From Obrimoposthia wandeli (taxonomy: Eukaryota): a stretch of 64,000 bases of DNA. Location: NCBI GenBank assembly GCA_977020255.1, contig CDROCS010000321.1, forward strand, positions 124,001 through 188,000. Direction: 5' to 3'. Shown piece after piece: positions 6,997 through 46,232 of this stretch; positions within the stretch are counted from its first letter, which is position 1; each line of letters starts with the position of its first letter. A program made the translations under genes and the position numbers. The notes under the pieces are model-generated. The model searched no databases and was not told where the DNA came from. It saw nothing but the letters and a program-made list of their open reading frames with translations.

Positions 6997-7007
6997 TTGG
7001 TCGTTAA

Positions 7008-7087: not shown

Positions 7088-7792
7088 ATGAATCTGATAC
7101 ACTCTTTCTTTAGTTTAGAGACACAACGTAAACGCTTGTTGAGTAAAGCGCCTGAAGGGGCGTTGAAACAATACTTAAGTGTGCCGATTATCGATCTTGA
7201 ACAACCAATTATGGACAGTGATATTTTAGCTGTTGATTTTGAAACAACCGGGTTGAATGCGAAACAAGATAATATTTTGAGTATTGGTTACGTCACGCTG
7301 GCTGCTAGCCAAATTAGATTGGATAGTTGTTATCATCAAATTGTCGCTGCGCACTGCCAACTTGAAGATGATAATGTGACTATTCACACCATCACAGATC
7401 AGGAAAAAGCCAGCGGACGGCCATTGGCAAGCGTCGTCGAGGACTTGTTAACGGCATTAGCGGGAAAAGCCATGCTGGTTCATTATGCTCAGATAGAAAA
7501 AAACTTTCTCGAACAAGCCTGTATTAAGCTGTATGGCATGGCGCCTGTATTTCCGATCATTGATACATTAGCTTTGGCTAAAAAGCGGCACGACAGGTGT
7601 AGTCAGGCTTACGCGCCATCGACGCTGCATTTGACGAGCTTGCGTGATGAGTATGGATTACCACACTATGCAGCGCACAATGCTTTAAACGATGCGATTG
7701 CCACTGCTGAGTTGTTTATGGCTAAAATACAACATTCAGAATTAAAGGGTGATACAAAACTTAAGTCTTTGATCACAAGTGCTTTCGGTTAG
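7088..7792 (+). CDS. DEDDh 3'-5' exonuclease (DnaQ-like), the usual partner of DUF294 genes
   Basis: ExoI VDFETTG, ExoII HYAQIE and ExoIII HNALNDAIATAEL motifs. Confidence 0.9.
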   Translation: MNLIHSFFSLETQRKRLLSKAPEGALKQYLSVPIIDLEQPIMDSDILAVDFETTGLNAKQDNILSIGYVTLAASQIRLDSCYHQIVAAHCQLEDDNVTIHTITDQEKASGRPLASVVEDLLTALAGKAMLVHYAQIEKNFLEQACIKLYGMAPVFPIIDTLALAKKRHDRCSQAYAPSTLHLTSLRDEYGLPHYAAHNALNDAIATAELFMAKIQHSELKGDTKLKSLITSAFG

Positions 7793-7890
7793 CTAAGTCG
7801 CATGTCGTGCGTGAACCGAGTTAACTTGGTCACAGTTTGGCAACATGGTGTCATGTATAGTAGGGGTTAATTATTTGTAGTCATACATGG

Positions 7891-8559
7891 ATGAATATGC
7901 ACGTAATGCCAGAAAAAATCATCATTGCTGATGATCACCCCCTTTTTCGCCAAGCATTGTTGATTGCCTTAAAAGAACAATTTAATACTACACAATGGCT
8001 TGAAGCCGAAACGGTTGAAAGCCTTAGTGATTGTTTAGTTAAAAATAACGATGTCGATTTGTTATTACTGGATCTTAATATTCCCGGTGCGCATGGCTTT
8101 GATCATCTCATTCGTATTCGTAAGCAATACCCAGACATTCCGGTTGTGGTTATCTCTGCTTACAGTGACGAGACCATTATAGGTAAAGCGATGCAGCACG
8201 GTGCATCAGGTTTTGTGCCCAAGTCAGAATCTGTGCCGACAATTATTACCGCTATCAATAAAGTATTATCTGGACAGTTGTGGGTACCAGGCTCGTTTGA
8301 AAAAGCGCAAGAAGCAGTGAGCAATGTTGCTGACGAGGCGATAGCTAAATTAACCGTACAAGAATATCGCATATTAATGATGTTTTCTGAAGGCCTGCTG
8401 AATAAACAAATTGGAGACAAACTTTGTGTTGCTGAGGCGACAGTCAAAGCCCATGCAAGCGCTATTTTTCGTAAATTGAATGTGCGTAATAGAACACAAG
8501 CTGCAATGATGTTGGGGCAACTCGATGTAGCGGATTACAGTGATAATTTAAAGGAATAA
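7891..8559 (+). CDS. crbR: LuxR/NarL-family response regulator, CrbR/ErdR-like
   Basis: IIIADDHPLFR, LLLLDLNIPG, GFVPKS and the HTH EGLLNKQI...TVKAHASAIFRKL; located in an acetate module next to a CrbS-like kinase. Confidence 0.75.
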   Translation: MNMHVMPEKIIIADDHPLFRQALLIALKEQFNTTQWLEAETVESLSDCLVKNNDVDLLLLDLNIPGAHGFDHLIRIRKQYPDIPVVVISAYSDETIIGKAMQHGASGFVPKSESVPTIITAINKVLSGQLWVPGSFEKAQEAVSNVADEAIAKLTVQEYRILMMFSEGLLNKQIGDKLCVAEATVKAHASAIFRKLNVRNRTQAAMMLGQLDVADYSDNLKE

Positions 8560-8563
8560 ATTA

Positions 8564-8995
8564 ATGAATAAGCATACTAAAGTTGCCGTACTGGTCGCGC
8601 CATTATTAGCCGTACTCGGTTATGTCGCCTCGGATTATTTTATTGAAAACGATGCGGATGAAATCAAATTAATCACCTTAGTACCTGAATCATCTTGTGC
8701 TGTACTTGACGGTGAATGCGTATTGATAAGCGGTGATTTCAAAATCAACGTATTTGATAAAGCAGGTATAACGGTTGTCAACTCGACTTTCCCGCTAGAT
8801 GAAGCCGTGTTGTTTTTGGTTAACGATGATAATTCTGCGACAGCATATCCTCTGACTCAAGTTCAAAGTAACTATTATTGGCAAGTGCAAACACCACTGC
8901 GTGAGTTAGCCGCGACCTCGGCAAGTTATAAATTAAGATTGATCGCTTCGATTAAAGGCGGTAATTACATCAGCGAATTTGAAACGTTGCTCTAG
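8564..8995 (+). CDS. Hypothetical membrane-anchored periplasmic protein (143 aa)
   Basis: One N-terminal hydrophobic helix and a Cys pair (SCAVLDGEC); 4 nt after the crbR stop and 19 nt before the crbS ATG. Confidence 0.7.
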   Translation: MNKHTKVAVLVAPLLAVLGYVASDYFIENDADEIKLITLVPESSCAVLDGECVLISGDFKINVFDKAGITVVNSTFPLDEAVLFLVNDDNSATAYPLTQVQSNYYWQVQTPLRELAATSASYKLRLIASIKGGNYISEFETLL

Positions 8996-9014
8996 TTTTT
9001 TAGTAGGTTATATT

Positions 9015-12000
9015 ATGTTCGCTAATTGGCAGTTAATGCTATTAAGTTTTTTTTATATCGCGTTATTGTTTTTGATTGCTTATTTAGGCGATAAATATCG
9101 TCATCTTATCCAAGGAAAACGGCAAGCGTTAATTTATGCGTTTGCCGTTTCTGTTTATTGTACCTCATGGAGTTTTCTCGGTACCACGGGGCAGGCTGCA
9201 ACCAGTGTTTACTCGTACTTGCCCATTTATTTAGGTCCTATCTTACTGCTTGTCTTCGCATGGCCTTTTCTACAACGTATTATTCAGACCAGTATCAGTT
9301 TTAATTTAACCTCTATCGCCGATTTACTTGCCGCTCGCTTTGGTAAATCACATGCCTTGGCTATCTTGGTGACGATGGTCTCGTTACTTGGCACCATGCC
9401 TTATATCGCCTTACAAATTAAAGCGATTGTTTATTCCTTCCAGCAATTACAAATCCAGCAAGACTTTATGCCATGGCAACTTGGTTTAGTGACCAGTTTT
9501 GTACTGGCTGGTTTTAGTATTCTATTTGGGATTCGAAATATTGATGTCACAGAACGTCATCCCGGTATTATGCTGGCGATTGCGTTTGAAGCCTTGGTTA
9601 AAATCATCGCTTTTGCCAGTGTCGGTATTTTCATTTGTTATATTGTCTTTGATTCACCACGGGATATCTGGCAACAAGCCAGTGCCAATGCTGACTTAGC
9701 CAGTGCATTGCAATTCCCCGATTTAAGTGCGATGTTTGGTATGATCATTATTGTGATGGCCGCATTTTTTGTGTTACCGCGGCAATTCCACGTCATGATT
9801 GTGGAGTTACGTGATGAACAAGATGCTTGGTTGAGCCGCCGTATTTTTCCCTTGTACCTACTTGTGTTTGCGTTTTTCTCTGCACCACTGGGGCTAGCGG
9901 GTTATTTACTACTCGGTAACAGCGTACCTGCGGATATGTATGTATTGGTGTTACCTTGGTATCAAGATCAAATGTGGTTAACACTGTTTGCATTTTTAGG
10001 CGCGATCTCAGCAGCAAGCTCTATGGTTATCGTTTCAACGATTGCCTTGAGTACCATGCTCAGTAATGAGATCGTATTCCCGTTTCTATTCAAGAAGAAT
10101 AAACATCCCACGCAATACCATGCGTTTAGATTAAAGCTGCTTAACATTCGTAAAGTGTTAGTGCTGTTTGTTATTTTTCTGAGTTATCTGGTCTTTCTGT
10201 TTATCCCTCCTACTGCATTAGCGAACTTAGGCGCGACTGCATTAGGCGCATTAGCACAACTCACGCCGGCATTAGTAGCGGCTTTCTATTGGCGTCGTGC
10301 GACATTAAAAGGGGTGTTTACAGGCATAAGTTTAGGATTTTCATTATGGACACTGGTTAATTTTTTACCGCAGTTAGGTTTATATCAAGGGCCACTCGAA
10401 GGCACTGTTTTTGCAAGTTCAACGGCAATCAACTTACTTTGCTTGACCATTAATATTGTCGCGATGATCCTAATATCCTTAGTTACCCGTTCGAGTATTC
10501 AAGAACGGATACAGGGGGCGTTGTTTTTAAAGCGCCAGTTAACGCCATCATTAGTGGAAAGTAAGCGCAAAGCGAAGTCAAAACGACAAGCGATATCCAT
10601 TGATGAGTTGCTGTTATTGACCGCGCAGTTTGTCGGTGACGATAAAGCATCTAAAAGCTTCCAGGCTTTTGAACAGGTAGCGATTACTTTAGGCTATACC
10701 GCTAAGGAAAAATCGGAATATGCACTTGAGCATGCCGAGAAAGTCTTATCGAGTGTGATGGGCTCGTCATCTGCACGCTTAGTGCTCAATTCGGCATTGG
10801 ATGGACATGATTTTGCGTTGGATGAACTGGCTACATTAGTCGGTAACGCATCAAGTCACCGCCAAGAATTTAGTCAGAATTTGTTAAAAAGTGCGATAGA
10901 AAATACCAGAGATGGGATCTCGATTGTAAATGATGAACTCGAACTGGTTGCTTGGAACAAGCAGTATGCGATGTTGTTTGATTATCCTGATGATATTCTG
11001 AGTGTGGGTTGTTCGGTTGAGTCATTAATACGCTTTAATGCCGAGCGCGGTTTGTGTGGTGCAGGTGATACTGAGTTTCATGTAAAAAAACGTCTCGATT
11101 TTCTACGTTTAAGACAGTCGCATAACTCCGAACGCTTACGTGAAGACGGTAAGGTTATTAGAATCGAAGGCAACCCATTACCTGATGGTGGCTTCTTGAT
11201 GGTTTTTTCCGATATTACCGTATTTAGACAAGCAGAGCAGGTATTAAAAGAAGCTAATCAAGATCTAGAAACCAGAGTTACTGAGCGCACCAATAAACTC
11301 GAAAAAGCCAATAAAGAGTTAGCCAAGGCGAGGGTAGTTGCAGATGAAGCGCTGAGTAAGAAAAGTCATTATTTACAAGTGTGTAGTCATGATTTATTGC
11401 AGCCACTAGAAGCGGCACGTTTGTTCACATCGGCACTGGCAAGTCAGTCGACGTTAAATGAACATCAGCAGCGCCAAGTGAAGAGTATCGACTTGTCGTT
11501 AAAAGTCGCGAATGAAATGATTGTTAATTTAGCCGAAGTTGCTCGTATTGAGAGTGGCAGTATTAAACCGCATATTGAAACATTCGCGCTAAATGATCTC
11601 TTTAGCCAACTTGCTAACGAGTTTTCTGCAGCAGCGAAACAACATGGGGTGAGTTTTACCATTATGCCGACAAAGCATTGGGTTAATACCGATAAACACC
11701 TGCTACGTCGCATATTACAAAATTTAATTGGTAATGCCTTTCGCTATGCCAGTCCTGGACGAGTATTGCTCGGTTGTCGCCGAAAAAGTGGTCAGATCAG
11801 TATTCAGTTATTAGATAATGGGCCCGGTATTGCGGCAAAAAATCAAGCTAAGGTATTCGAACAATTCAGTCAATTAGAGGACAATAATGGTTCGAATGAT
11901 GGCTTAGGGCTAGGACTTAGTATTTGTAATAGCCTATCGGTATTGCTGCAGCATCAATTGAGTCTTGATTCTATTGAAGGTCGAGGTTGTCGTTTTAGTC

Positions 12001-12455
12001 TACAACTGTGCGAGGCGACCGCGTTACAACAAGATAATATTGTACCGATTCTTGCTCCGACGGACCTGACAGGGACAGCTGTACTGTGTATCGATAACAA
12101 TCCGGCTATTTTGGAAGGCATGTTAGAGCTAATGAGCAGTTGGGACTGTGAGGTTTACGGTGCTAATTCAATCGCCACGGCGAAAGCATTATTTAAGCAG
12201 TGTGATTTCGATATTTTGTTAGTGGATTATCAATTAGATAATAGTGAGGATGGATTAACGTTAATTTCAGCGTTAAGAGCAATTAATCCCACTACGCCAG
12301 CAATCCTTATTACCGCGACGACTGAAGCTGGCATTGCAGATAAGGCCGCTGCGGCTAACGTCGGTTTATTACGTAAACTGGTTAAGCCTGCTGCGCTTAG
12401 AGCGATGATGAGTGCGCAATTAACTGAATCACTACAAACACAGTTTAGTCGCTAA
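9015..12455 (+). CDS. crbS: SLC5(SSS)-STAC-PAS hybrid sensor histidine kinase with REC domain, CrbS-like (start moved to ATG 9015)
   Basis: N-terminal SSS-like TM domain (VYCTSWSFLGTTG), PAS (WNKQYAMLFDYP), H-box SHDLLQPL, N-box NLIGNAFRY, DNGPGI, GLGLGLSI and a C-terminal REC. Confidence 0.85.
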   Translation: MFANWQLMLLSFFYIALLFLIAYLGDKYRHLIQGKRQALIYAFAVSVYCTSWSFLGTTGQAATSVYSYLPIYLGPILLLVFAWPFLQRIIQTSISFNLTSIADLLAARFGKSHALAILVTMVSLLGTMPYIALQIKAIVYSFQQLQIQQDFMPWQLGLVTSFVLAGFSILFGIRNIDVTERHPGIMLAIAFEALVKIIAFASVGIFICYIVFDSPRDIWQQASANADLASALQFPDLSAMFGMIIIVMAAFFVLPRQFHVMIVELRDEQDAWLSRRIFPLYLLVFAFFSAPLGLAGYLLLGNSVPADMYVLVLPWYQDQMWLTLFAFLGAISAASSMVIVSTIALSTMLSNEIVFPFLFKKNKHPTQYHAFRLKLLNIRKVLVLFVIFLSYLVFLFIPPTALANLGATALGALAQLTPALVAAFYWRRATLKGVFTGISLGFSLWTLVNFLPQLGLYQGPLEGTVFASSTAINLLCLTINIVAMILISLVTRSSIQERIQGALFLKRQLTPSLVESKRKAKSKRQAISIDELLLLTAQFVGDDKASKSFQAFEQVAITLGYTAKEKSEYALEHAEKVLSSVMGSSSARLVLNSALDGHDFALDELATLVGNASSHRQEFSQNLLKSAIENTRDGISIVNDELELVAWNKQYAMLFDYPDDILSVGCSVESLIRFNAERGLCGAGDTEFHVKKRLDFLRLRQSHNSERLREDGKVIRIEGNPLPDGGFLMVFSDITVFRQAEQVLKEANQDLETRVTERTNKLEKANKELAKARVVADEALSKKSHYLQVCSHDLLQPLEAARLFTSALASQSTLNEHQQRQVKSIDLSLKVANEMIVNLAEVARIESGSIKPHIETFALNDLFSQLANEFSAAAKQHGVSFTIMPTKHWVNTDKHLLRRILQNLIGNAFRYASPGRVLLGCRRKSGQISIQLLDNGPGIAAKNQAKVFEQFSQLEDNNGSNDGLGLGLSICNSLSVLLQHQLSLDSIEGRGCRFSLQLCEATALQQDNIVPILAPTDLTGTAVLCIDNNPAILEGMLELMSSWDCEVYGANSIATAKALFKQCDFDILLVDYQLDNSEDGLTLISALRAINPTTPAILITATTEAGIADKAAAANVGLLRKLVKPAALRAMMSAQLTESLQTQFSR

Positions 12456-23900: not shown

Positions 23901-23924
23901 AAACCACCTTCGGGTGGTTTTTTT
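23901..23924 (+). terminator. Terminator of the sdh-suc operon
   Basis: AAACCACC-TTCG-GGTGGTTT followed by a T run. Confidence 0.93.
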
Positions 23925-24045
23925 ATTTGTGCATTTTATGGTTTTAAGGTCTATATTATTAACTATGAGCTTGAAAAATATTAATGTTTTTTGAACGTTA
24001 TTTTTTTCCTCTGAGTTAACTTTGTATTCTTTAGGAGAATTTATA

Positions 24046-24381
24046 ATGGACATATTACGACCTCATGACGGAATCATAATTTTACCTATCGCTACAGACC
24101 TCGATACCGAGCACGTAGTTAGTATTCAGCCTAGCTTAGAGGCGTTGGTTGATGATCATGCTGAAAACATTATCTTAGATTTTACTCATGTTACTTTTAT
24201 TGACTCAACGGGTATTGGCGCTATTGTTTTTTTGTTCAAAAGACTCACTTCACAACGTCGTACTCTTTCTCTTCTTAAAGTCTCAGGCCAACCGCATAAA
24301 TTGATGACGATGTTACGAGTCGAAAACGCAATCCCTTTTATTGAAGACATTCCTGAATCTACTGCAGGTCACTCGGCATAA
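24046..24381 (+). CDS. STAS-domain anti-sigma-factor antagonist, SypA-like (start moved to ATG 24046 after AGGAG)
   Basis: IILDFTHVTFIDSTGIGAIVFLFKRL with the phosphorylatable Ser at position 54; first gene of a syp-like operon. Confidence 0.9.
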   Translation: MDILRPHDGIIILPIATDLDTEHVVSIQPSLEALVDDHAENIILDFTHVTFIDSTGIGAIVFLFKRLTSQRRTLSLLKVSGQPHKLMTMLRVENAIPFIEDIPESTAGHSA

Positions 24382-24403
24382 CTAAATCGCCGTAAGGTAT
24401 TGA

Positions 24404-25537
24404 ATGAATAGATTATTGCTATGGACAGCTATATGTATTTTCCTTTCTGGTTGCACAAACTGGCCTAGTGTTGGCTACTTTGAGAATACAACAATCCATA
24501 CTGAAGAAAGAATTCAATTTAAACAACATTATGACTATTTGAATTTACATTTTTCAGTAGCTAATCTACGCGGTGCACAAACGTGTACACCTGCCTACGT
24601 AAAAACGGTTGAAAATATTAATAGTCGTGTTGAGAAAGCCATTGCCGTTGAAGACCCGCGAGATGTGAAAATAGAAATCGCCATTCTAGAAAAAAACATC
24701 ACCAACTTAATTCTGCACCTCAATCGAGTCACGAGTAACACTAATTGTGCTCAACCACCACGTTTAGTCACGTCTAATTTTGTTCACCCGTTAATTTATC
24801 AGCTCGATCTCTTACTGTACTGTGCACCACAATTTGAAAAAGGTAATGCTACTTTGACTGAAGAGTACAAAGTGTGTCTTCGCCAAGTAAGCTTTTTGCT
24901 GTTAGATAATCCAGAAATTATAATTGAATACACTAAATACAGATTGTTTGAAAATAGCATTAGTGCAAAAAAATCACAATCAAATATCAATTACACCAAC
25001 AATATAGTGACTCATAATGTCACGACCATTGTTGATAAAGAAAGTGAAAATTTAGCGGTTACAGTTAATCAAAATGATGAAGATTATAATGACATCATGC
25101 GCCAATATTTACTCTTTGAACAAGTGCCTGGCGTGAGTGTGCAGCAAATTTCTCGATTACAGTTAGACCTAGATCAAGTGCATAACCCCGTTCAAATTCA
25201 TGAGATAGCTGCAACAGACGCGCGTCAGAATCAACCTCAGTTATCTACAGTCGATGATTATGCGACAAGCCTAAAGGATGTTGAGTTACTTAATTTACGT
25301 ACAGATGTGATCTTGGATTATGTTTTGAACATCACTGCTGACCCACTACGTCACAAGGTTATCTATGAAGACTTACGACTCAGTTCTGTCACTTCAATAA
25401 CGCCAGTGATTAGCACGTTATTGTGGCAATCAAAGCATAATCAAGATGTCGACCATAAAGTAAAAAATTGGCGGTTTTTGTTGAACGAAGACGAGCTTTT
25501 TTCCGATGCGTCACTGCCAAAAGGAGTCGCATTATGA
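24404..25537 (+). CDS. Lipoprotein with a degenerate, interrupted OmpA-like domain, SypB-like
   Basis: Lipobox LSGC; FEKGNATLTEEYKVCLRQVSFLLLDNPEI resembles the start of an OmpA-C domain; occupies the sypB position in the operon. Confidence 0.6.
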   Translation: MNRLLLWTAICIFLSGCTNWPSVGYFENTTIHTEERIQFKQHYDYLNLHFSVANLRGAQTCTPAYVKTVENINSRVEKAIAVEDPRDVKIEIAILEKNITNLILHLNRVTSNTNCAQPPRLVTSNFVHPLIYQLDLLLYCAPQFEKGNATLTEEYKVCLRQVSFLLLDNPEIIIEYTKYRLFENSISAKKSQSNINYTNNIVTHNVTTIVDKESENLAVTVNQNDEDYNDIMRQYLLFEQVPGVSVQQISRLQLDLDQVHNPVQIHEIAATDARQNQPQLSTVDDYATSLKDVELLNLRTDVILDYVLNITADPLRHKVIYEDLRLSSVTSITPVISTLLWQSKHNQDVDHKVKNWRFLLNEDELFSDASLPKGVAL

Positions 25538-27654
25538 AATTTTCATTACTGTGTTGTACTTTCTGTTTAACACTGTGTTTTACTTTGATATCAACGTCGT
25601 CAATAGCTTATGCAGAAAGCGATCTTGTTGATTCTGGCGACCAACTGTTTATTTTTATGCCAGGTGAAAGCGATTTCGAAGAACCGTTTCAAGTTGATGC
25701 AAGTGGTTACATTCAAATACCTGAAATAGGGCGGATACAAGTCAAAGGTAAAACCCTAGCGGCAGTACTTAAAGAATTAAAAACCGCATTGAGTGTGGTG
25801 TTTCGTGATATATCGAAACTGTACATTGAGTTTAGAGCGCGCGAGAAGTTAGTGACCGTATTAGGCTATGTTAATGATCCACATGAAGTTGTACTGCCTG
25901 AATTTGGTAATGTACAGATGGCATTGAATAAAGCTGGCGGCATGCTTGCAGGCGCTCAACTGGACAATATGCAATTGCAACGAGGCGCTAAAGTGATCAT
26001 TTTCGACTTTAAGCGTTACTTGGAAACGGGTGATGACAACGTATTGCCAGTGCTTAGATCGGGCGATGTTATTTTTGTGCCTTCATCGCCGCTTACTGGC
26101 AATGTACAAATGACTTTTGATGCGACAACGTTAAAATCGGGCGGTGATGCAAGTGATACCCAAAAAGCGGTGACTGTTTTTGGTGAGGTTAATGCACCAG
26201 GCACGTTCTCTTATGTACCGGGTATGACGGTGATAGAAAGTTTAATGAAGGCTAATGGCGTTACCCGTTATGGTAATGTAAGTAAGATTCGAGTCATGGG
26301 GTTAAAAGAGCCACAAACATTCGATTTAAAGCTTTACCTAGATACCGGTGATGTTTCTGAATTACCGATAATACGACCAGGCACGACTATTTTTGTACCG
26401 ATTCAAGTTGCAGATATCAAAGTGGGCCTACAAGTTGTTTATGTCATGGGGCAAGTGAATAAACCAGGTGCTTATGAAGGCCGGGAAGGCATTACGTTTA
26501 TGGATATGCTTGCCAATGCCGGTGGTCCTAATCGATATGCTGATACGCAACAAATCCGCGTGTTGAAAGTGTCTGGTGACACAATCCAGTTTAATTTAAA
26601 GAAATATACCGATGATCCTGTAAATAACCCTTATCCTAAAATCACCGGTGGCGATGTCATTTTCTTACCCGAAAAAGCCGATATGATTGAGAAATCCTGG
26701 TTAATTGAAGCGCATAACGAGGCCATTAAAATCATCGGTGCAGTGAAGAATCCAGGCCGCTATCAATGGGACGATGATATGACATTCCTTGATTTGTTAG
26801 GGCATGCCGAAGGACCGACTGAAAAAGCCGATTTAGCCAAAATAATTATCGTTGGTAACGATGGTTTAGGTGAGCGGCAGTCTTTTGATTTAGAAAAATT
26901 CATGAAAGAGGGTGGTGATTATTTAATACTACCGCAGTTATCTGCTGGTGATACTGTGATGTTCAACGAACTACCTGATGATCCAACAGACAATAAATCT
27001 AAATGGATTAAGCAAGAATCTGAGTCTTCAATTTATATACTTGGTGCGGTTGGATCACCAGGGCGTTATGCTTTTAATAGCCGATTAGACTTTTTAGACT
27101 TATTATCTGCTGCTGATGGGCCGACGAATGAAGCTGATATCAAACACATTAAAGTCACTCATCGTAATAGACGTTATGCGAAAACCTCCACCCTTGATCT
27201 CGATATGTACTTTGAGACGGGTGATGAAAGTCTGTTACCGCAAATACTACCTGGTGATACCATTTACATTCCAGCGAAGACAGATCAAGGGATATTGAAC
27301 AATACCGCTAATATCGTTCAAGTATTAGGAGCTGTTCACAACCCTGGGCGTTACAAATATGATTCCTCATTGGATGTGGTGGGTATATTAACAATGGCTG
27401 GAGGGCCAACGTCAGAGGCTTACATTGACCGTATTGTCATCGTGACTAAACGTGGTGAAATGGAACACACTGCAAGGTCGTTCAACATGAAGCATTATTT
27501 TACCCAACCAGACTATCGCGATATACCGATTATACATGCGGGGGATACCATTTATGTACCTAACGAAAAAGACTCAAACTGGAGCCAGCTAATGGATATA
27601 TTAGGCAGTGCACTGAGTATCGTAACACTCTTTATTGTCGGCTCTTCCCTATGA
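25534..27654 (+). CDS. Polysaccharide export protein with Poly_export and six SLBB repeats, SypC/Wza-like (start moved to ATG 25534, ATGA overlap)
   Basis: Signal peptide (AYA-ES), VDASGYIQIPEIGRI, six V-x-V/I-x-G-x-V-x-x-P repeats and a C-terminal amphipathic helix. Confidence 0.9.
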   Translation: MKFSLLCCTFCLTLCFTLISTSSIAYAESDLVDSGDQLFIFMPGESDFEEPFQVDASGYIQIPEIGRIQVKGKTLAAVLKELKTALSVVFRDISKLYIEFRAREKLVTVLGYVNDPHEVVLPEFGNVQMALNKAGGMLAGAQLDNMQLQRGAKVIIFDFKRYLETGDDNVLPVLRSGDVIFVPSSPLTGNVQMTFDATTLKSGGDASDTQKAVTVFGEVNAPGTFSYVPGMTVIESLMKANGVTRYGNVSKIRVMGLKEPQTFDLKLYLDTGDVSELPIIRPGTTIFVPIQVADIKVGLQVVYVMGQVNKPGAYEGREGITFMDMLANAGGPNRYADTQQIRVLKVSGDTIQFNLKKYTDDPVNNPYPKITGGDVIFLPEKADMIEKSWLIEAHNEAIKIIGAVKNPGRYQWDDDMTFLDLLGHAEGPTEKADLAKIIIVGNDGLGERQSFDLEKFMKEGGDYLILPQLSAGDTVMFNELPDDPTDNKSKWIKQESESSIYILGAVGSPGRYAFNSRLDFLDLLSAADGPTNEADIKHIKVTHRNRRYAKTSTLDLDMYFETGDESLLPQILPGDTIYIPAKTDQGILNNTANIVQVLGAVHNPGRYKYDSSLDVVGILTMAGGPTSEAYIDRIVIVTKRGEMEHTARSFNMKHYFTQPDYRDIPIIHAGDTIYVPNEKDSNWSQLMDILGSALSIVTLFIVGSSL

Positions 27655-28370
27655 ATATATTACCGGAAACATTTATAGAAATAGACCAAATTTATCAGCT
27701 AATTATGAATGAAAATATTAAGTCGTTAGCGATCAACTGCGCTCAAGGAGGGGAAGGTACTACTGAGTTGGTTTTAGCGCTTGCTCGGCGTCATAAAGCG
27801 GCTGGAAGTCGAGTCCTTATTGTAGATCTCAATACATTCAAACCAGCAATCACCAATGAATATGTTCAGGAAAAGCAGTCATGGTCTCTTGATGATACTG
27901 ATTTACAAACCGCCTCCATGACTCAATTTTCTGAAATGATTGATATTTTACCTGCCCCACAAGGTGAGCAAGATCAAAATATTAGCTTCCGAGACGAAAA
28001 GAAGATCAAAAATGCGATCGACTTTTGGTTACAACACTATAATTTTATTATATTTGATACATGTGCAATTACGCTAACAAATTTTTCAAACATACCAGGT
28101 GAAGTGATTGCTAGGGGTTGTGATGCCAGTTTACTTATTATCGCACCCGGTATTTCACTCGAGAGTCGGGTATTAAAGACACTCGAGATGCTTAAGCAGA
28201 ATAATGTGACATTACTTGGCACTGTTATTAATGATGTTAAGTGCCCACCGCTCGATATGCAACTTAGAAACTCAGTACGTAGACGACTCAAGCGCTTACC
28301 GATACTGAAGCAATGGTTACTTAATCGAATTTCGAATATTGAATTATTAAAAGGAAGAATCGGCCGTTGA
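27651..28370 (+). CDS. Wzc/CapB-like P-loop protein (chain-length/tyrosine-kinase domain), SypD-like
   Basis: Deviant Walker A GGEGTT, A' LIVDLN, Walker B IIFDT and LLGTVIND; no TM segments. Confidence 0.8.
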   Translation: MNILPETFIEIDQIYQLIMNENIKSLAINCAQGGEGTTELVLALARRHKAAGSRVLIVDLNTFKPAITNEYVQEKQSWSLDDTDLQTASMTQFSEMIDILPAPQGEQDQNISFRDEKKIKNAIDFWLQHYNFIIFDTCAITLTNFSNIPGEVIARGCDASLLIIAPGISLESRVLKTLEMLKQNNVTLLGTVINDVKCPPLDMQLRNSVRRRLKRLPILKQWLLNRISNIELLKGRIGR

Positions 28371-29857
28371 TGAAAACACAACTTTTTGCCAAGCAATATC
28401 CGCTAAAACTTGATTCAATCAGTGAGGTTCGACGTTTACTGACTACTTTATGTCATCAGTTAGCGCTTGAACAAGCTGAAATAGATCGGGTCACAATAGT
28501 ATTGGCTGAATATTTGTCTAATTTGTATTTTCATAATTCCGACGCTGTTCACTGGTTTAGTATTGAACTGGCTGGTAGAAATGCTGATTGGTATTTTGCA
28601 GTGTTCGATAATGGTGATACTTTCAATCCCTATGACGTTGATACTAAAGATATATTTAATGGCGAGTTACTAACTGGTGGTATGGGGTTAGCGTTAATTC
28701 AAAAAAATAATCCTGATGGTTGTTATGTCAGTGAAAATGGCATTAATAAATTAACTTGCCCATTGAGGAAGCTGGAAAAAAAGCTAAACGTTGTCATTGT
28801 TGATGATGATCGTATTTTATTATCTGCGTATCATGCTTATCTTAAAAATGATTTTGTCGTACACATTTTTTCTGATGCATCTTTAGCGCTTAAATTTATT
28901 GCTCACGAAGGTTGTGATCTTATTATTGCCGACATACACATGCCTGAGATGTCTGGATTTGAATTCAGAAAAAAGGTTGAAGACCTTGATAAGGGCGCAT
29001 TAACACCGTTCGTATTCTTAACTGGCGATGAGAATTTATCGGTGCAAGAACAAGCTGCAGAAGTGTCTATTGACGGTTACTTAATTAAACCTATTACCAA
29101 AACATCATTACTCGCTGTTTGTAACCGGGTAATACGCAGAACTAACCAGTTAGCGCTACATTATCAACAACGAATAGTAGAGTCTCTGAGCAGACCGTTT
29201 AAGCCTTCACTACCTGCAAGTTGTAGACACTGGAATTTTGCGTTAGCACATACACCTGCGACTGAAGGAGGTGGTGACTTTGCATTTTTTCATGATTTTG
29301 GAGAGAGTCAAATTATCGTTTTGGGCGATATTATGGGGCATGGGCCTGTTGCTAAATTTCATAGTTTTGCCATCATGGGGTATTTGGAAGGGGTTGTAAC
29401 GTCGGCAGAAACATCCCCCTCGACCTTGCTTGCTGGATTATCCAATAGACTCTTTTCAAATCAGTTGTTAGAAACCAGTATGCTCACCTGTATGGTGATC
29501 AAACTGACCGATAACCAATGTGAAATCGCCACTGCAGGTCATCCTCAACCTTACTTATTGCAAGATTCTGGTTATCAAGCCATTGACTGCAAAGGAACCG
29601 TATTAGGCTTGTTACCTGATGAGCAATATTCATCGGTGATTCTGCAATTAACACCAGAGGATAAGATTTTTTGTTATTCAGACGGCATTTTTGAAAATAT
29701 TGACCGCCATTGTGACTGTATTGATAATATACTTGTTGATATCAAAGGGAAAACAGCTCAAAGTACGTTAGATAAACTGTGGTTGCGGTTTGAATCACTA
29801 TCGCCTGAACAGTTACAAGATGATGTCACTGCGCTTATTATAGATTTCAATATTTAA
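28367..29857 (+). CDS. Tri-domain partner-switching regulator: RsbW-like Ser kinase, REC and PP2C/SpoIIE phosphatase, SypE-like
   Basis: Kinase: EYLSN(52), DNG, GGMGL. REC: VDDD, D189, FLT, IKP. PP2C: GGGDF, GDIMGHG, SDG, QDD. Alternative ATG start at 28370. Confidence 0.92.
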   Translation: MMKTQLFAKQYPLKLDSISEVRRLLTTLCHQLALEQAEIDRVTIVLAEYLSNLYFHNSDAVHWFSIELAGRNADWYFAVFDNGDTFNPYDVDTKDIFNGELLTGGMGLALIQKNNPDGCYVSENGINKLTCPLRKLEKKLNVVIVDDDRILLSAYHAYLKNDFVVHIFSDASLALKFIAHEGCDLIIADIHMPEMSGFEFRKKVEDLDKGALTPFVFLTGDENLSVQEQAAEVSIDGYLIKPITKTSLLAVCNRVIRRTNQLALHYQQRIVESLSRPFKPSLPASCRHWNFALAHTPATEGGGDFAFFHDFGESQIIVLGDIMGHGPVAKFHSFAIMGYLEGVVTSAETSPSTLLAGLSNRLFSNQLLETSMLTCMVIKLTDNQCEIATAGHPQPYLLQDSGYQAIDCKGTVLGLLPDEQYSSVILQLTPEDKIFCYSDGIFENIDRHCDCIDNILVDIKGKTAQSTLDKLWLRFESLSPEQLQDDVTALIIDFNI

Positions 29858-29914
29858 CGAGCTGCAACAAGTAACGATTAGTTAAGATTATAATTTACGG
29901 TATGAGGTAATGAA

Positions 29915-30259
29915 ATGGAAAACACAGTTATAAATGAAACGGTATTCACGCAATTATTGGTTGATGTCGGAGACGAAATGTTACCGGCATTAGTTGAAGT
30001 TTTTAATGAAGAAACAACAGAGCGGATTTCAGACCTACAAGCTCTAATGGCTAATCTCGACAATGATAAAGTTGCGCAGAACTGTCACAGTATAAAAAGT
30101 AGTGCAGGAACGTATGGGGCGTTAATTGTGCAGCAACATGCTGAGGAGTTGGAAGTGATGGCAAAATCAAATAACACGGCTGACGTTCAAGTGAAATTAC
30201 CATTATTAATAAAAAGTTTAGAAGATGCGATTAGTGCGCTGACGTTAAAATGTGATTAA
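29915..30259 (+). CDS. Stand-alone Hpt phosphotransfer protein, LuxU-like
   Basis: 114 aa; CHSIKSSAGTYGA with His58; convergent with yvcK. Confidence 0.9.
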   Translation: MENTVINETVFTQLLVDVGDEMLPALVEVFNEETTERISDLQALMANLDNDKVAQNCHSIKSSAGTYGALIVQQHAEELEVMAKSNNTADVQVKLPLLIKSLEDAISALTLKCD

Positions 30260-31142
30260 CGACAGATTCGATTGCTGCTTTTAACTTTTGTCTATCGTGA
30301 TAGTTTTTATTTTCATCTTCACGTAAATCATGGGAGTAGGTCGGATAAGTTAAGTCAGATTGTTTATCTATATCCTGTATCACTGCATTAATCAGCGGAA
30401 AGCCAAGCGTATCCTCGCACCATTGTAAGCGTTCTTGCAGTGGAATCGTTGATGCTGGCCCCATCTCATGCTGTAAGTTACCTAAGTAAATTACTTTTGC
30501 GTTGGTTCTACGTAAAGCTTTTTGTATATCTTTAAGCAGAAGTGGTGGCATGATACTGGTTAGGAATGAACCTGGACCTAATAGTATAAGTTCTGCTTTT
30601 TCAATTGCCTCTACAGCTTCAAGTGTCGCTGAGACATTTGGTTGAACTGTTAATTGATTTGGAAACTCATGCATCTTATCGACAGATACTTCGCCGTGTA
30701 CATCACTGCCACAAGGCGTTACTGCAATTAAGTCACTAGGCTGTTCTGACATCGGAATCAGCTGGCATTCGACGTGTAACATATTACGAATAAGATTTAC
30801 CGCATCTAACGGGCGCACACAAAGATTATCTAATGCCACAAGCATGAGATTACCTAAGTTATGATTCTTCAGCTCACCTTCATTTTGAAAGCGATATTCA
30901 AACAATAAAGAGCCAATGTCTGGTTGAGTGACTAACTGATTTATACAATTTCGAATATCACCCCAAGCAATACAATTCTCAGAATTTCTTAGCCGACCTG
31001 TTGAACCACCATTGTCGGTTGTTGTTACAATACCCGTTAATCTTGGCCCTAAAAAGGAAAGTGAAGACAGCACTCGTCCGAGTCCATGACCACCGCCAAT
31101 AGCGACAACTTTATTAAGATCTGAAAGTGATTTTTGCAACAT
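30231..31142 (-). CDS. yvcK: YvcK/YbhK (CofD-related, UDP-GlcNAc-binding) family protein
   Basis: VVAIGGGHGL, TTTDNGGSTGRLR, HNLGNL and GPGSFLTSI motifs; start taken at ATG 31142. Confidence 0.95.
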   Translation of the reverse strand: MLQKSLSDLNKVVAIGGGHGLGRVLSSLSFLGPRLTGIVTTTDNGGSTGRLRNSENCIAWGDIRNCINQLVTQPDIGSLLFEYRFQNEGELKNHNLGNLMLVALDNLCVRPLDAVNLIRNMLHVECQLIPMSEQPSDLIAVTPCGSDVHGEVSVDKMHEFPNQLTVQPNVSATLEAVEAIEKAELILLGPGSFLTSIMPPLLLKDIQKALRRTNAKVIYLGNLQHEMGPASTIPLQERLQWCEDTLGFPLINAVIQDIDKQSDLTYPTYSHDLREDENKNYHDRQKLKAAIESVVNHILTSAH

Positions 31143-31294
31143 AGGATGAATCAAAATTAAGTAAAGTAGATAACATCATCATATCTTGAAATAAATTATT
31201 TTGATAATTAAGTTAGCTTTATTTGACGAATTAATAAGCAAAATTTAAATGATTTCGTTGTTTTGAGTTATCAGACAGCTATTTATCAAAATGT

Positions 31295-34456: not shown

Positions 34457-34552
34457 TGATTTATCATTTTCTACTATAATTACCTGTACCTATCCCTTTA
34501 AATTTACTAAAAAATAGTTTAAGTTTAACGACCATAAAATTTAATATAACTC

Positions 34553-34680
34553 AAACTCCGATCCTTAATGATCTAAATTTATAAATTTAAATATGATATT
34601 AAGGACTCATAGCATTCGAAATTGCTATAAGGGTTTAATCAGAAATGATTAGGCCTCCCGTATTTGGAAAGGTGTTTATG
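34553..34680 (+). ncRNA. Moco (molybdenum cofactor) riboswitch / RNA motif in the moaA leader
   Basis: The 3' part GAAATGATTAGGCCTCCCGTATTTGGAAAGGTGTTTATG is nearly identical to the E. coli moaA leader as I recall it. Stems TCCTTAAT/ATTAAGGA and ATAGCA/TGCTAT are visible, and 5' AAACTCC pairs over the RBS. Confidence 0.88.
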
Positions 34681-35655
34681 CAACTTCAAGATCAGTTTTC
34701 GCGTAAATTTTATTATTTACGCCTATCAATTACAGACGTCTGTAATTTCAAATGTAACTATTGCTTACCAGATGGCTATAAAGCCGACGGTAAACCTGAA
34801 TTTTTAGGGCGTGACGAATTACGTCGTATTGTTACCGGGTTTGCTGAAATGGGCACTGAAAAAGTCCGTATTACTGGTGGTGAACCTTCATTAAGAAAAG
34901 ACTTCACGGATATCATCTCAGACATCGCTGCGATCCCTAAAATTAATAAGGTCGCGACAACCACTAACGGTTTTAATCTAGAAAAGTATGCGCAACAATG
35001 GCGTGATGCTGGACTTGATGCAATAAATGTCAGTATCGACAGTTTAGATGCTCGCATGTTTCGCCAGATTACCGGTAAGAATATGTTCCACAAAGTGATG
35101 GCCGGTCTAGATGCCGCTTTTACTGCTGGATTTGAAACCGTTAAAGTCAATACGGTATTGATGCGCAATTTAAATGATATTGAATTAGATGATTTTTTAA
35201 ATTGGATCAAAACCAGACCCATTCAATTACGTTTTATTGAGTTAATGCAGACTGGTGATAATCAGGCATTGTTTGATAAACACCACGTATCCGGTGCAAG
35301 TATTCGTGACAAGTTGATATTACAAGGTTGGGTAAGTAAAGTCAGAGGTAAGGCCGATGGGCCTGCGCAAGTCTTTATTCATCCTGACTATGTTGGTGAA
35401 ATTGGCTTGATTATGCCTTATGAGAAGAACTTTTGTTCGACTTGTAACCGTTTACGTGTATCCACTAAAGGGCGCTTACATCTGTGTTTATTTGGTGAGG
35501 CGGGTGTTGAGTTACGTGATCTAGTGCAAGATGATAATCAACAGCAAGCATTGATAAATCGGGTTGTTGAGCATATGTCAGATAAAAAATCGACTCATTT
35601 CCTACAAGATGGTTTCACCGCGAATACACCTCATTTAGCATCAATTGGTGGTTAA
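34678..35655 (+). CDS. moaA: GTP 3',8-cyclase (start moved to ATG 34678)
   Basis: Radical [18 protein letters not shown]-terminal FCSTCNRLR...LCL and a terminal IGG. Confidence 0.98.
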
Positions 35656-43240: not shown

Positions 43241-45220
43241 CTAAATAGAATCAAGAATGAATGTCATAATGGCATCTTCTTTATTCTCCATATCCAACGC
43301 TTTGGGTATGTAGTGCGGCGCTTTCAATATGCCTCTCGCAATTAACTCATCCAATAATCCTTTTGACTCAAAGCCAGTTTTACCGATAAACAAGCTTGAT
43401 ATATCACCTTGCTTATATATTTGTAACGCTTCTTTAAGTCCACGTAAATACAAATAATCTTTGGTAAAACCACCCCCTCGATAAGCTCTTAACGTAATAG
43501 TAAAGGCATCATCACTGGCGACGGTATAGTCATTGATTAAATCCAGATAACATTGATTAAACGACTCACCAGCCACCATTTTTGACACGGCAATAACACG
43601 TAATGCTAGCGTCTTTAAACGGTGTAATGGTAAATGCCCTGACAAATACTCACATAAAATGGCTAAACCTTCTTGTGCATGGGTATTACCGGGTAAACCT
43701 AATTTAAAAATGTGTAATGGCTGTACTTCCGCGTTGGCGGTTGTTAATAAATGTACGCCGAGTTCATGGTGAATAAGCGCGTTAAGATCGGTTTGGTTAA
43801 ATCGACACTCGTTATTCACCTTGATCGTACGACCACTTACCATCGCTCTGGCAATCATATTTTTAGCTTCGACAACCTTACATTTAACCCCGTATTCAAC
43901 CGCCGCTTGTTGAAATGCCACCACAGCGTCTGCAGCATCCATACTGGTTTCAATAACAGGCAAGTATTCACACGCGTGCAAAATGAACTTGGCGTTACTA
44001 ATGTCTTCTTTATTTGGCTCACCGTAATAGCGCAGTGAGTTATATAAGAATTGCTCGGTGCCAATACTGGCTAATAAATCAATGCGCATTGCCAGTTGTT
44101 CAATGACAGTGCGGTACATCTTTTGAATATCCGCATCTAAAATCGTTTCCACAGGAAGTCGATACAAGTTTTCTTTAAGCTTGTAGGGGTCGATGTCTAA
44201 CTGACGATACGTAAAATTAGGCAAATAGGAAAACGGATTATGTAAGAATCGTTTCTTTTCCTGCTTCAAATTTTTTGGCGTAATATAGTTAAGTGTATTA
44301 ATGCCACGGGCTAGGGCGTATAGCTCTTTATCTAGCTTCACGACTTCTGTCGGTAAGCAAGAAGATAATACATGCCGTAACGGTTTTCGTTTACCTTTGC
44401 TGTAATGGGTGATTGTTGCTGCAGCATGTTCGTTTATTGCTGTTTTCATGCCTTCTTTTAGTTTTTCGATGACCAGTGGAAAAGATTCTCCACCCACTTC
44501 ATTCATGTAAACCTTTTTAACTTCAATCGGCATGATTAAGGTATTACGAAAATGCTCAGTAACAAAACTAGCTTGGTAACCGAGACCTTTAAATACGTCA
44601 TTTTCAGCCACTGATACCGTAATGTTCGGTAGCTCAATGTGCTTTAATTTACGTTGTAGGTTATCGAGTACTTTACGCCAGTGACGGCTATTTAATTGCT
44701 GTGTACCAATATTAAATGTCGGCGTATTAGTGTCGATACGCTGATAATTATAAGCGTGAATATCATAAAGCAAACATAAACCAAACTTTGCCTCTAAGGT
44801 GCTAATCAAACACTTTAAAATACGGTAATAGCGGCTGTGTTTTGCTTTGCTTAACGCTATCTCGCTTGCAGGTAAAGCCGCTGACCAGACATCTTTACCC
44901 CAGGCTGTTTGGTACACACAATCCGTTAACGGCCTGTTTAAATCATATTCATAACGCGAGTCTTCAACTTGCAAGACGATCGGTTGTGAAGAGATGAAGT
45001 CGCCGGTAAAGGGATCTTCTTCAAAATAGCGTTCTTGTTCCGTCAATGCTATATGTTGGCTTAATGATTCTCGTAATTGATGCCCGTGATGAATCGCAGT
45101 TGCTATATGTGGCTGATACTCACTGATCCGTAATGTTAAACTCCCGTCCTCTAACTGTGCAGAGAAAGGGATTTGTTTACGAATATTATTGAGTATCGCC
45201 TTTTCAGTAAGCCGCTGCAT
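43241..45220 (-). CDS. Fusion of an N-formylglutamate amidohydrolase-like domain and a DUF1704 / QEGLA-motif metallopeptidase domain
   Basis: N-half: TAIHHGH, EEDPFT, SRYEYDLNR, YDIHAY. C-half: HHELGVH, QEGLA, RAYRGGGFTKDYLYLRG. Confidence 0.88.
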   Translation of the reverse strand: MQRLTEKAILNNIRKQIPFSAQLEDGSLTLRISEYQPHIATAIHHGHQLRESLSQHIALTEQERYFEEDPFTGDFISSQPIVLQVEDSRYEYDLNRPLTDCVYQTAWGKDVWSAALPASEIALSKAKHSRYYRILKCLISTLEAKFGLCLLYDIHAYNYQRIDTNTPTFNIGTQQLNSRHWRKVLDNLQRKLKHIELPNITVSVAENDVFKGLGYQASFVTEHFRNTLIMPIEVKKVYMNEVGGESFPLVIEKLKEGMKTAINEHAAATITHYSKGKRKPLRHVLSSCLPTEVVKLDKELYALARGINTLNYITPKNLKQEKKRFLHNPFSYLPNFTYRQLDIDPYKLKENLYRLPVETILDADIQKMYRTVIEQLAMRIDLLASIGTEQFLYNSLRYYGEPNKEDISNAKFILHACEYLPVIETSMDAADAVVAFQQAAVEYGVKCKVVEAKNMIARAMVSGRTIKVNNECRFNQTDLNALIHHELGVHLLTTANAEVQPLHIFKLGLPGNTHAQEGLAILCEYLSGHLPLHRLKTLALRVIAVSKMVAGESFNQCYLDLINDYTVASDDAFTITLRAYRGGGFTKDYLYLRGLKEALQIYKQGDISSLFIGKTGFESKGLLDELIARGILKAPHYIPKALDMENKEDAIMTFILDSI

Positions 45221-46232
45221 CTGCGATCACTTGGCGAAATTCATTTTTACGTGAAATACTGATATTTTTTGCGTGCACAACACTTTCTACAAAATCAATG
45301 ATCTCAACTTGTAATTTAGTGCGATTCAAACGGTTAATACGGGTGATACCACCTGGGCTTAACACATTCACTTCGACTAACTTACCGTTAATGAGATCAA
45401 GGCCAACAAGATATAAACCATCTCTGACTAACTTAGGACCAATGTGTTTACACAAACGTAATTCTTGTTTTGTCAGTACATGTTTTACTTCTTTACCGCC
45501 AGCGTGAATATTTGAACGCACATCCCCGTCTGCTGGTATACGTTTCATTGCACCAATCGGTTGTCCGTTTAACATCATAATACGAACGTCACCTTCTTCA
45601 GCACCTTCAATATAGTCTTGCAGGATGACGTAGTTTTGATTGTCACCAATATAAAAATCAAGCAAGGATTTAACACTCGATTTAGCTTTCTTATCTAATA
45701 AGATCACACCTGAACCACCATAGCCGTTTAATGGCTTAAGGATCATGCAGTCTTTGGTGTTTTCGGCTAGCACTGATTCGAGGTAATCACGTTGCTTTGA
45801 TACATGCGTTACTGGAATGAATTCTTTATTCAAATCAGACATTGACGCCGTATACAATTTATTGTTCGCTACACGCAAACCATCAATGTCATTCATGATA
45901 AAAGTATCATCACGCACTGAGTCTAAAAAGTTTAATGCCATGGTATCGAGCGGCGGATTAGAGCGCATAATAATGGCGTCAAAACCGGCTAAAGGTAACT
46001 GTGCTTCTCTAAATTCTGCCTTGCGATAAAAACCAGGAATATTTGCTGATACAGCCCCTTTTTTAAGCACTTTGCAAAAAGCGATCGACATGCTGTCACG
46101 CATCGTTAAATTATTTGGTGTCGTAATAGCAACAGTGTGACCGCGACTCGCCACTTCATGGATCATGCGAAGTGTAGAATCATTTTCTGGCTCAACACTT
46201 TCCCACGGGTACATAACAAAACAAATTTTCAT
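45204..46232 (-). CDS. Prokaryotic glutathione synthetase-like ATP-grasp ligase
   Basis: MRSNPP, NNKLY, KPLNGYGG, LQDYI, RSNIHAGG and EVNVLSPGG; 17-bp overlap with the downstream fusion gene. The symbol gshB is withheld because orthology is uncertain. Confidence 0.88.
   Translation of the reverse strand: MKICFVMYPWESVEPENDSTLRMIHEVASRGHTVAITTPNNLTMRDSMSIAFCKVLKKGAVSANIPGFYRKAEFREAQLPLAGFDAIIMRSNPPLDTMALNFLDSVRDDTFIMNDIDGLRVANNKLYTASMSDLNKEFIPVTHVSKQRDYLESVLAENTKDCMILKPLNGYGGSGVILLDKKAKSSVKSLLDFYIGDNQNYVILQDYIEGAEEGDVRIMMLNGQPIGAMKRIPADGDVRSNIHAGGKEVKHVLTKQELRLCKHIGPKLVRDGLYLVGLDLINGKLVEVNVLSPGGITRINRLNRTKLQVEIIDFVESVVHAKNISISRKNEFRQVIADAAAY

Follow-up and report, generated by a model that had tools for sequence, protein, structure and literature searches.

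Gene organisation between sucD and yvcK

The DNA considered here, referred to as the window, is a 64,000 nucleotide (nt) stretch of the Obrimoposthia wandeli assembly GCA_977020255.1 (contig CDROCS010000321.1, positions 124,001 to 188,000). Our subject is a Moritella operon at window positions 24046-30259, which resembles the first genes of the syp biofilm locus of Aliivibrio (Vibrio) fischeri. The original prediction, made from the sequence alone, placed six co-oriented genes here, between sucD and yvcK, with several overlapping stop and start codons. Open reading frame (ORF) lists and domain scans bear this out. Six co-oriented ORFs lie between sucD, with its terminator, on one flank and a convergent yvcK/CofD-like gene on the other. 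Three of the junctions are start/stop overlaps (ATGA, ATGA and TGATG). The features are as follows.

23901-23920, + strand: intrinsic terminator of sucD, an 8 bp stem then a T-run; upstream boundary
24046-24381, + strand: SypA-type single-domain STAS protein, 111 amino acids (PF01740, E 1e-17)
24404-25537, + strand: SypB-related lipoprotein, 377 amino acids, lipobox LSGC; OmpA peptidoglycan-binding domain degenerate or replaced
25534-27654, + strand: SypC-like OPX exporter with signal peptide; Poly_export and six SLBB_2 matches, TIGR03027 at 179 bits
27651-28370, + strand: SypD-like cytoplasmic P-loop protein, 239 amino acids; ATGA overlap with the exporter stop
28370-29857, + strand: SypE-type regulator, HATPase_c_2-REC-SpoIIE/PP2C, 495 amino acids; N-terminal RsbW-like Ser kinase, receiver domain (REC), C-terminal PP2C phosphatase
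29915-30259, + strand: LuxU-family stand-alone histidine phosphotransfer protein (Hpt), 114 amino acids, His58 in HSIKSSAGTYGA; resident gene at the luxU address
30231-31154, − strand: yvcK/CofD-like gene, convergent with the Hpt gene (29 nt overlap); address marker, outside the system

Because the sucD terminator bounds the operon upstream, the genes need a promoter of their own within positions 23921-24045. No σ54 −24/−12 element was found in the 5' intergenic region upstream of the operon, and no SypG-type enhancer motif (TTC[GT]CA-N3-TG) was found near it. The exporter most likely starts at ATG 25534, in an ATGA overlap with the lipoprotein stop. The SypE-like ORF most likely starts at ATG 28370, within the TGATG overlap. 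This start gives 495 residues, as in the M. dasanensis homologue, and the window enzyme is 99% identical to the M. dasanensis protein.

The six genes are conserved in at least 14 Moritella clusters. We found the identical gene order in Moritella sp. PE36, in a Moritella metagenome-assembled genome (MAG) and in a relative, L001, whose SypE-like protein is 45% identical. Since the order recurs in all three, the arrangement is not due to chance. All six genes show 65-88% amino acid identity in Moritella sp. PE36 and the Moritella MAG. The ratio of nonsynonymous to synonymous substitution rates (dN/dS) was 0.04-0.20 across the six genes, indicating purifying selection; the synonymous rate (dS) was saturated for the SypE-like gene. 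Values were 0.04-0.05 for the exporter, 0.09 for both the STAS protein and the Hpt, and 0.17-0.18 for the SypB-like gene, which is, with the SypD-like gene, among the highest of the six. Across Moritella, all ORFs and catalytic motifs are intact. The six are working genes. Base composition showed no anomaly at the block, and recent horizontal transfer was rejected as an explanation for its presence.

The block and syp-type loci

For five relatives of the SypE-like enzyme outside Moritella, we retrieved the surrounding genes.

L002: Motilimonas sp., syp-type locus
L003: gammaproteobacterial MAG, syp-type locus with a GNVR co-polymerase
L087: rearranged syp-type locus
L088: Thaumasiovibrio sp. 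DFM-14 (Vibrionaceae), syp-type locus with hnoX and a hybrid kinase adjoining
L089: metagenomic contig with the closest outside match, syp-type locus with a Wzy-type polymerase

All five belong to full syp-type loci, which have glycosyltransferases, a σ54 regulator or a hybrid kinase. In L002, L003, L088 and L089 the gene order is STAS protein, OmpA lipoprotein, SLBB exporter and SypD-like protein. The SypE-like gene then comes next, or after a hybrid kinase gene and, in L089, a periplasmic-binding-protein gene. A σ54 activator is encoded nearby in three of these four loci (L002, L003 and L089). Glycosyltransferases and a Bac_transf priming enzyme flank the syp-type blocks of the relatives. 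The same A-B-C-D-E order, with an OPX exporter of the SypC type and a P-loop protein of the SypD type, is found in the Moritella block. The order of sypA-E, which had been predicted for the locus, is borne out by five cassette homologues and an arrangement shared with four other loci.

The Thaumasiovibrio locus has two further features. A SypQ-like glycosyltransferase of family 2 is fused to a Bac_transf priming enzyme in a protein of 609 amino acids (L088 4207-6036). In addition, an hnoX gene and a hybrid kinase gene stand beside the locus (L088 12806-15068), like the HnoX-HahK input of V. fischeri (PMC12369376).

The individual proteins were compared in turn. The STAS protein matches PF01740 and its predicted phosphorylation site, Ser54, lies inside a FIDSTG motif, as first read from the sequence. 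The STAS core, V-F-DS-GIGAIVFLFKRL ... GQP ... LR, is common to the STAS proteins of five syp-type loci, including that of Thaumasiovibrio, at 33-43% identity. Locus L087 has a second, divergent STAS protein with 21% identity to that of Moritella. The export protein, for which six SLBB repeats had been proposed, does match Poly_export and has six stretches matching SLBB_2. It is 44-45% identical to the exporters of L002 and L003.

The SypE-like enzyme has the predicted kinase-REC-PP2C layout. Counted from a TTG start, the N-box Asn and REC Asp are N52 and D189, the numbers originally given; from the likelier ATG start they are N51 and D188. The PP2C aspartates are present and the motifs GGDF, GDIMGHG, YSDG and DDVT are intact. 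Each domain best matches the SypE-like proteins of syp-type loci. The REC domain is 36-42% identical to SypE-type REC domains versus 27% to the REC domain of LuxO, and a swap of the domain from LuxO was rejected on these figures. At E<=1e-30, an exhaustive HMMER search for the three-domain enzyme recovered 264 clusters, formed at 50% identity. The Moritella SypE-like clade is a deep branch, and its next best matches are 34-36% identical. SypE homologues are also named, by name only, from Plesiomonas, Hahellaceae and Spartinivicinus; among the names looked up, none was from Aliivibrio or Moritella. We looked for A. fischeri SypE among the matches by means of N52/D192. The sole match, P0148, was in a differently arranged locus outside Aliivibrio and was rejected.

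It had been thought surprising that such genes should occur outside Aliivibrio. It is not, because the tri-domain enzyme is widespread and syp-type cassettes occur in several gammaproteobacterial lineages; SypE-type enzymes lie in the syp-type loci of Thaumasiovibrio, Motilimonas and several metagenomic lineages. Vibrio vulnificus and V. parahaemolyticus are without sypE (PMC4517449).

The HATPase_c_2 and STAS families are also those of RsbW and RsbV, and the TIGR00377 model (anti-sigma factor antagonist) scored 50.8 bits, just below its cutoff. The genes could, on this basis, encode a classical RsbW/RsbV/RsbU switch, in which the N-terminal kinase sequesters a sigma factor and the link to export is secondary. 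However, there is no sigma or anti-sigma gene in the operon or the window, and the homologues are consistently found within polysaccharide loci. Furthermore, V. fischeri SypE and SypA act below transcription (PMC3843225). The three enzyme domains, like the STAS core, are nearest to those of syp-type loci; they do not cluster with unrelated RsbU/RsbV systems. A sigma-factor switch is thus very improbable. The comparison with the Bacillus RsbU/RsbV/RsbW and SpoIIE/SpoIIAA/SpoIIAB switches is one of families: PP2C phosphatase, STAS antagonist and HATPase_c_2 Ser kinase. In Moritella, by contrast, a single protein carries kinase and phosphatase on either side of a REC domain, there is no sigma factor, and the genes are embedded among export genes. 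Gene order and protein similarity support the identification of the Moritella block as a syp-type STAS/SypB/SypC/SypD/SypE cassette and not a generic RsbU/RsbV system.

Likeness to A. fischeri syp extends to several details. The gene order (STAS, lipoprotein, SLBB exporter, P-loop protein, kinase-REC-PP2C) is identical. The phosphorylated Ser lies in a DS(S/T)G motif in both, at S56 in A. fischeri and S54 in Moritella, and the N-box Asn and REC Asp are at near-equal positions (N52/D192 in SypE; PMC3610818). The REC domain is in both expected to receive its phosphoryl group from an Hpt, and control of syp has already been linked to LuxU (PMC12369376). The differences are equally clear. Moritella has no sypF, sypG or sypH-R nearby, and no σ54 promoter. 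Its SypB-like protein is without an OmpA domain, and its Hpt is a separate gene at the luxU address rather than a domain of a hybrid kinase.

Divergent lipoprotein and P-loop protein

Two proteins of the block depart from the domain content first assigned to them. One had been called an OmpA-like lipoprotein. Only residues 1-182 are homologous to the OmpA-type lipoproteins, that is the SypB-like proteins, of syp-type loci (hhalign 98.8%, E 5.7e-17). The match ends where the OmpA fold begins, the position of the GHAD motif reads TKYR, and the final ~190 residues are lineage-specific. No Pfam match to an OmpA domain was obtained even at E<=10. An AlphaFold2 model, built with four sequences, had a mean predicted local distance difference test score (pLDDT) of 41.6, which is too poor to judge the C-terminal fold. 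The description as OmpA-like thus holds only in part.

The second had been described as a Wzc-like ATPase. It is a P-loop protein, and tyrosine-autokinase and BcsQ models match it weakly; the top score, for TIGR01007, was 55.8 bits against a cutoff of 108. Its Walker A motif is deviant (GGEGTT, with no Lys) and there is no C-terminal Tyr cluster. The name Wzc-like ATPase is weakly founded. The protein is 28-33% identical to the SypD-like proteins of L001-L003. In all four SypD-like proteins compared (window 27651-28370, L001 3924-4634, L002 5808-6581 and L003 9285-9995) the Walker A Lys is absent, and the motif is GEG, then T or V, then S or T. Its recurrence in SypD-like proteins from three further loci makes this deviant Walker A a family trait. 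As judged from the motif, SypD-like proteins may bind nucleotide without normal hydrolysis, or they may be pseudo-ATPases.

The Hpt gene is resident at the luxU address

The last gene had been described as a stand-alone Hpt with H58 as its phosphorylated residue, and a 114 amino acid ORF with His58 is indeed present. Its best NCBIfam model is LuxU_Vib (NF041948), at 46.9 bits, below the equivalog cutoff of 140. This cutoff is strict, because the bona fide LuxU of Photobacterium profundum scores only 91.7 bits; the LuxO of the same pair scores 886 bits against its own equivalog. The best Protein Data Bank match of the Moritella Hpt is V. harveyi LuxU (1Y6D).

A survey of this neighbourhood across relatives had been proposed, and we made one from yvcK. 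In all, 80 yvcK loci from reference genomes were surveyed for a small Hpt ORF that is convergent with yvcK and abuts or overlaps its 3' end. The results were as follows.

Vibrionaceae: Hpt at yvcK in 28 of 28; LuxO directly upstream in 28 of 28, uvrB in the locus in 27 of 28
Aeromonas: Hpt at yvcK in 18 of 19; LuxO not upstream
Moritella: Hpt at yvcK in 2 of 2; SypE-like gene directly upstream
Shewanella: Hpt at yvcK in 0 of 15
Enterobacterales: Hpt at yvcK in 0 of 13
Motilimonas: Hpt at yvcK in 0 of 2
Psychromonadaceae MAG: Hpt at yvcK in 0 of 1

The Moritella and Vibrionaceae addresses agree closely. In each, the Hpt gene is convergent with yvcK and overlaps it tail-to-tail (29 nt in the window, 39 nt for luxU in P. 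profundum), and a Lon-N-domain gene and moaA follow beyond yvcK. The proteins are of similar size (114-119 amino acids) and have a similar phospho-His motif, H-x-x-KSSA: Moritella has HSIKSSAGTYGA, LuxU has HAIKSSAASFGA and the Aeromonas Hpt has HSMKSSCGSYGA. The gene immediately upstream, on the same strand, codes for a REC protein. In Vibrionaceae this REC protein is LuxO, the known acceptor of the LuxU Hpt. In Moritella, conversely, it is a SypE-type partner-switch enzyme and not a σ54 activator. The Moritella Hpt also differs from LuxU in its score relative to the equivalog cutoff, and no Rfam match to a Qrr small RNA was found in the window.

The neighbour of the address Hpt thus varies by family, an instance of phosphorelay rewiring. 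It is LuxO in Vibrionaceae and a SypE-type enzyme in Moritella, and Aeromonas has a FIST protein with a hybrid kinase close by. The Aeromonas example comes from A. salmonicida (L028 6586-9887), where a FIST protein and a hybrid kinase (HisKA-HATPase-REC, no Hpt) are encoded between the Lon-N gene and yvcK. The two may be a phosphodonor pair for the Aeromonas address Hpt.

The original prediction held that SypF had here been reduced to, or replaced by, a free Hpt. On this account the six genes are one self-contained portable module, inserted as a unit between sucD and yvcK, and the Hpt is a leftover of SypF. The co-orientation and tight packing of the genes fit such a module. In addition, the Moritella Hpt scores 47 bits against the SypF-like Hpt domain of Motilimonas, which is close to its scores against true LuxU (32-45 bits), and the Hpt tree is compatible with an origin from SypF. 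However, an Hpt overlapping yvcK is present in Vibrionaceae and Aeromonas with no syp block there. The nearest outside relatives of the Moritella Hpt are the Aeromonas address Hpts, both by score (54-69 bits) and in the tree, where Moritellaceae group with Aeromonas (84/83). No free Hpt was found in any of the five syp-type loci examined, and the absence of a compositional anomaly gives no sign of insertion. These points, and the fate of the Hpt after loss of the block (below), make the portable module improbable. The Hpt is better described as a resident gene of the luxU address, shared with Vibrionaceae and Aeromonas.

The gap between the SypE-like and Hpt genes is 57 nt in the window and 17 nt in L001. 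The 57 nt spacer, which is not conserved between species, contains a perfect TATAAT at 29889-29894 without a good −35 element. Judged from the sequence, the Hpt gene may have a weak promoter of its own here.

Loss of the block in relatives of Moritella

In two Moritella-related lineages the block has been lost. In the first, L004 (GCA_052426985.1), the order is sucD, a 100 amino acid ORF (9675-9977), Hpt and yvcK, and the rest of the block is deleted. By hhalign, the 100 amino acid ORF matches residues 1-66 of the SypB-like lipoprotein (89.8%, E 2e-6) and, on that alignment, looks like a surviving SypB-like N-terminus. In the second, represented by two Joint Genome Institute metagenomes (L005 224-4697 and L006 221-4693), an integrase fragment, a DDE_3 transposase and a gene for an 829 amino acid lipase replace most of the block. 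Immediately before the Hpt gene is an 88 amino acid C-terminal PP2C remnant, which matches the last ~80 PP2C residues (E 3e-20). In both lineages the Hpt remains at its address with the phospho-His motif intact. Since only remnants are kept in L004 and L005/L006, the block is old in the clade and dispensable. The Hpt outlives the block, so the claim of a portable six-gene plug-in that includes the Hpt is not supported.

These deletions might suggest that the Moritella block is itself a decaying, non-working remnant of an ancestral full syp locus; it has no biosynthetic genes, has lost the OmpA domain and carries a deviant Walker A motif. The deviant Walker A, however, also occurs in the SypD-like proteins of full loci. 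Moreover, purifying selection extends to every gene (with the saturation of dS noted above for the SypE-like gene), and the reading frames and catalytic motifs are intact throughout Moritella. We give this explanation hardly any credence.

A proposed reduced cassette beside a LuxU-family Hpt

We propose that the operon is a reduced syp-type switch-and-export cassette, the operon neighbour of Moritella's resident LuxU-family Hpt, and we put the probability of this reading at about 60%. In the mechanism that we envisage, hybrid sensor kinases without an Hpt of their own would phosphorylate His58 of the Hpt. The phosphoryl group would then move from the Hpt to the Asp in the REC domain of the SypE-like enzyme (D188 when counted from ATG), and the enzyme would flip from Ser kinase to PP2C phosphatase. 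Unphosphorylated STAS-Ser54 would permit polysaccharide export through the SypB/C/D-like apparatus. Genes for sugar building, a flippase/polymerase and the membrane co-polymerase partner would be located elsewhere in the genome.

The position of the genes suggests transfer from Hpt to REC, by analogy. In Vibrionaceae the upstream REC protein is the true acceptor, and throughout the clade only 17-57 nt separate the SypE-like and Hpt genes. The switch would run in the direction known from V. fischeri. There, unphosphorylated SypE phosphorylates SypA and blocks biofilm formation below transcription; once phosphorylated, SypE is a phosphatase and lets biofilm formation proceed (PMC3843225, PMC3610818). 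The V. fischeri kinase HahK signals via SypF and LuxU, and the authors of that work favour phosphorylation of SypE by LuxU (PMC12369376). The hybrid kinase BinK, a repressor of syp biofilm, is listed with the domains DHp, CA and REC and no Hpt; orthologues are reported from M. dasanensis and M. marina (PMC5019070).

The Moritella operon also recalls HptB-HsbR-HsbA of Pseudomonas, as a functional analogy only. Both combine a free Hpt, a REC-bearing kinase/phosphatase and a STAS protein. The domain order of HsbR is REC-PP2C-kinase, not kinase-REC-PP2C. The Pseudomonas output is FlgM/σ28 and a diguanylate cyclase instead of an exporter, and there are no export genes in that operon. In P. aeruginosa several orphan hybrid kinases supply the free Hpt, which in turn phosphorylates the kinase/phosphatase on its REC domain; HsbR sets the phosphorylation of the STAS protein (Ser56) and switches between motile and biofilm lifestyles, and the three genes form one operon (PMC5085249). 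It is plausible that any hybrid kinase could act on the Moritella switch through a free Hpt. That logic is already known from HptB-HsbR-HsbA (PMC5085249).

One hybrid kinase is encoded in the window itself. Positions 2850-12455 hold genes for an SSF symporter, a DUF294-CBS nucleotidyltransferase, an exonuclease, a REC-GerE regulator and a 1158 amino acid PAS_7 hybrid kinase with REC and no Hpt. The cluster looks like one of the acetate-switch type, and its kinase is a potential client of the free Hpt.

Several observations weigh against the reduced-cassette reading. First, Pfam scans of essentially every ORF above 100 amino acids in the window found no glycosyltransferase, flippase, polymerase or co-polymerase, and no σ54 activator gene. 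An exporter with a cytoplasmic P-loop partner, but without a membrane co-polymerase or biosynthetic genes, cannot make polysaccharide alone. Because the genes are nevertheless under strong purifying selection, partner genes are expected elsewhere in the genome. A SypQ-like profile search returned no Moritella protein among its best 120 of 641 matches, but likewise none from Aliivibrio or Vibrio. The same Pfam scans of the window found no Hpt-bearing kinase, and the forecast that sypG-R are absent from the locus is correct for the window, which has no sypF, sypG or glycosyltransferase genes. Second, homology to syp was judged through proxies (Thaumasiovibrio, Motilimonas and metagenomic loci) and not through A. 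fischeri proteins, and identity to these proxies is only 28-45%. Third, the SypB-like protein has no OmpA domain and the SypD-like protein no Walker A Lys. Fourth, branches in the Hpt tree are long and LuxU is not separated from SypF-type Hpt domains, so that the case for a resident Hpt rests mainly on synteny. Finally, retention of an intact Hpt after block loss in two lineages means that the Hpt has at least one role or partner independent of the block, and it may lie beside the SypE-like gene by coincidence.

The last point leads to a different view of the operon, in which adjacency carries no function. The SypE-like REC would be fed by an Hpt-bearing hybrid kinase elsewhere, and the Hpt would serve another regulator, for example a LuxO-like protein encoded elsewhere. 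Besides the intact Hpt of lineages without the block, this would fit the Aeromonas address, where the Hpt is near a FIST protein and hybrid kinase with no REC-output gene beside it, and the TATAAT at 29889-29894, which could give independent transcription. Conversely, L001 retains the linkage and orientation seen in Moritella, with a SypE-like protein that is 45% identical and a gap of only 17 nt. The Vibrionaceae gene in the same upstream position encodes the true acceptor of the Hpt. In M. viscosa, no complete quorum-sensing cascade was found (PMC4462113). We regard a functionless adjacency as unlikely, though it deserves to be kept in mind.

Under the reduced-cassette reading, the original prediction of an undescribed system is not upheld. 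A reduced syp-type cassette on a LuxU-family Hpt is not a new kind of system. What is new is the natural linkage of sypE and luxU, and the separation of switch and export genes from those for biosynthesis. A further step, which we advance tentatively and hold at somewhat less than even odds, is that the LuxU-family hub of Moritellaceae has been rewired. Its output would have passed from transcription (LuxO) to post-translational toggling of a SypE-type enzyme, which gates an exporter via a STAS protein and is split from the biosynthetic half. If so, the Moritella hub would be a natural, hard-wired LuxU-to-SypE link, such as has so far only been hypothesised in V. fischeri.

Control of biofilm by SypE and SypA is a well-studied model, and the operon bears on two questions within it, the target of SypA and the feeding of SypE by LuxU. 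Since this lineage keeps only SypA, SypE, the SypB/C/D-like proteins and a LuxU-type Hpt in one operon, the likely target of SypA is narrowed to the export proteins or something encoded elsewhere. For LuxU-to-SypE phosphotransfer, the operon offers a simple system.

Other features of the window

Four ORFs of 218, 350, 159 and 130 amino acids, at 61381-63709 and 58520-58912, had no Pfam match. On the − strand, at 43241-46232, a glutathione-synthetase-like ATP-grasp gene overlaps a gene that encodes a fusion of an FGase amidohydrolase and a MATCAP-type metallopeptidase. A molybdenum cofactor (Moco) riboswitch (96 bits) is located at 34544-34690, before moaA, and the nap operon and moaBCE lie downstream.

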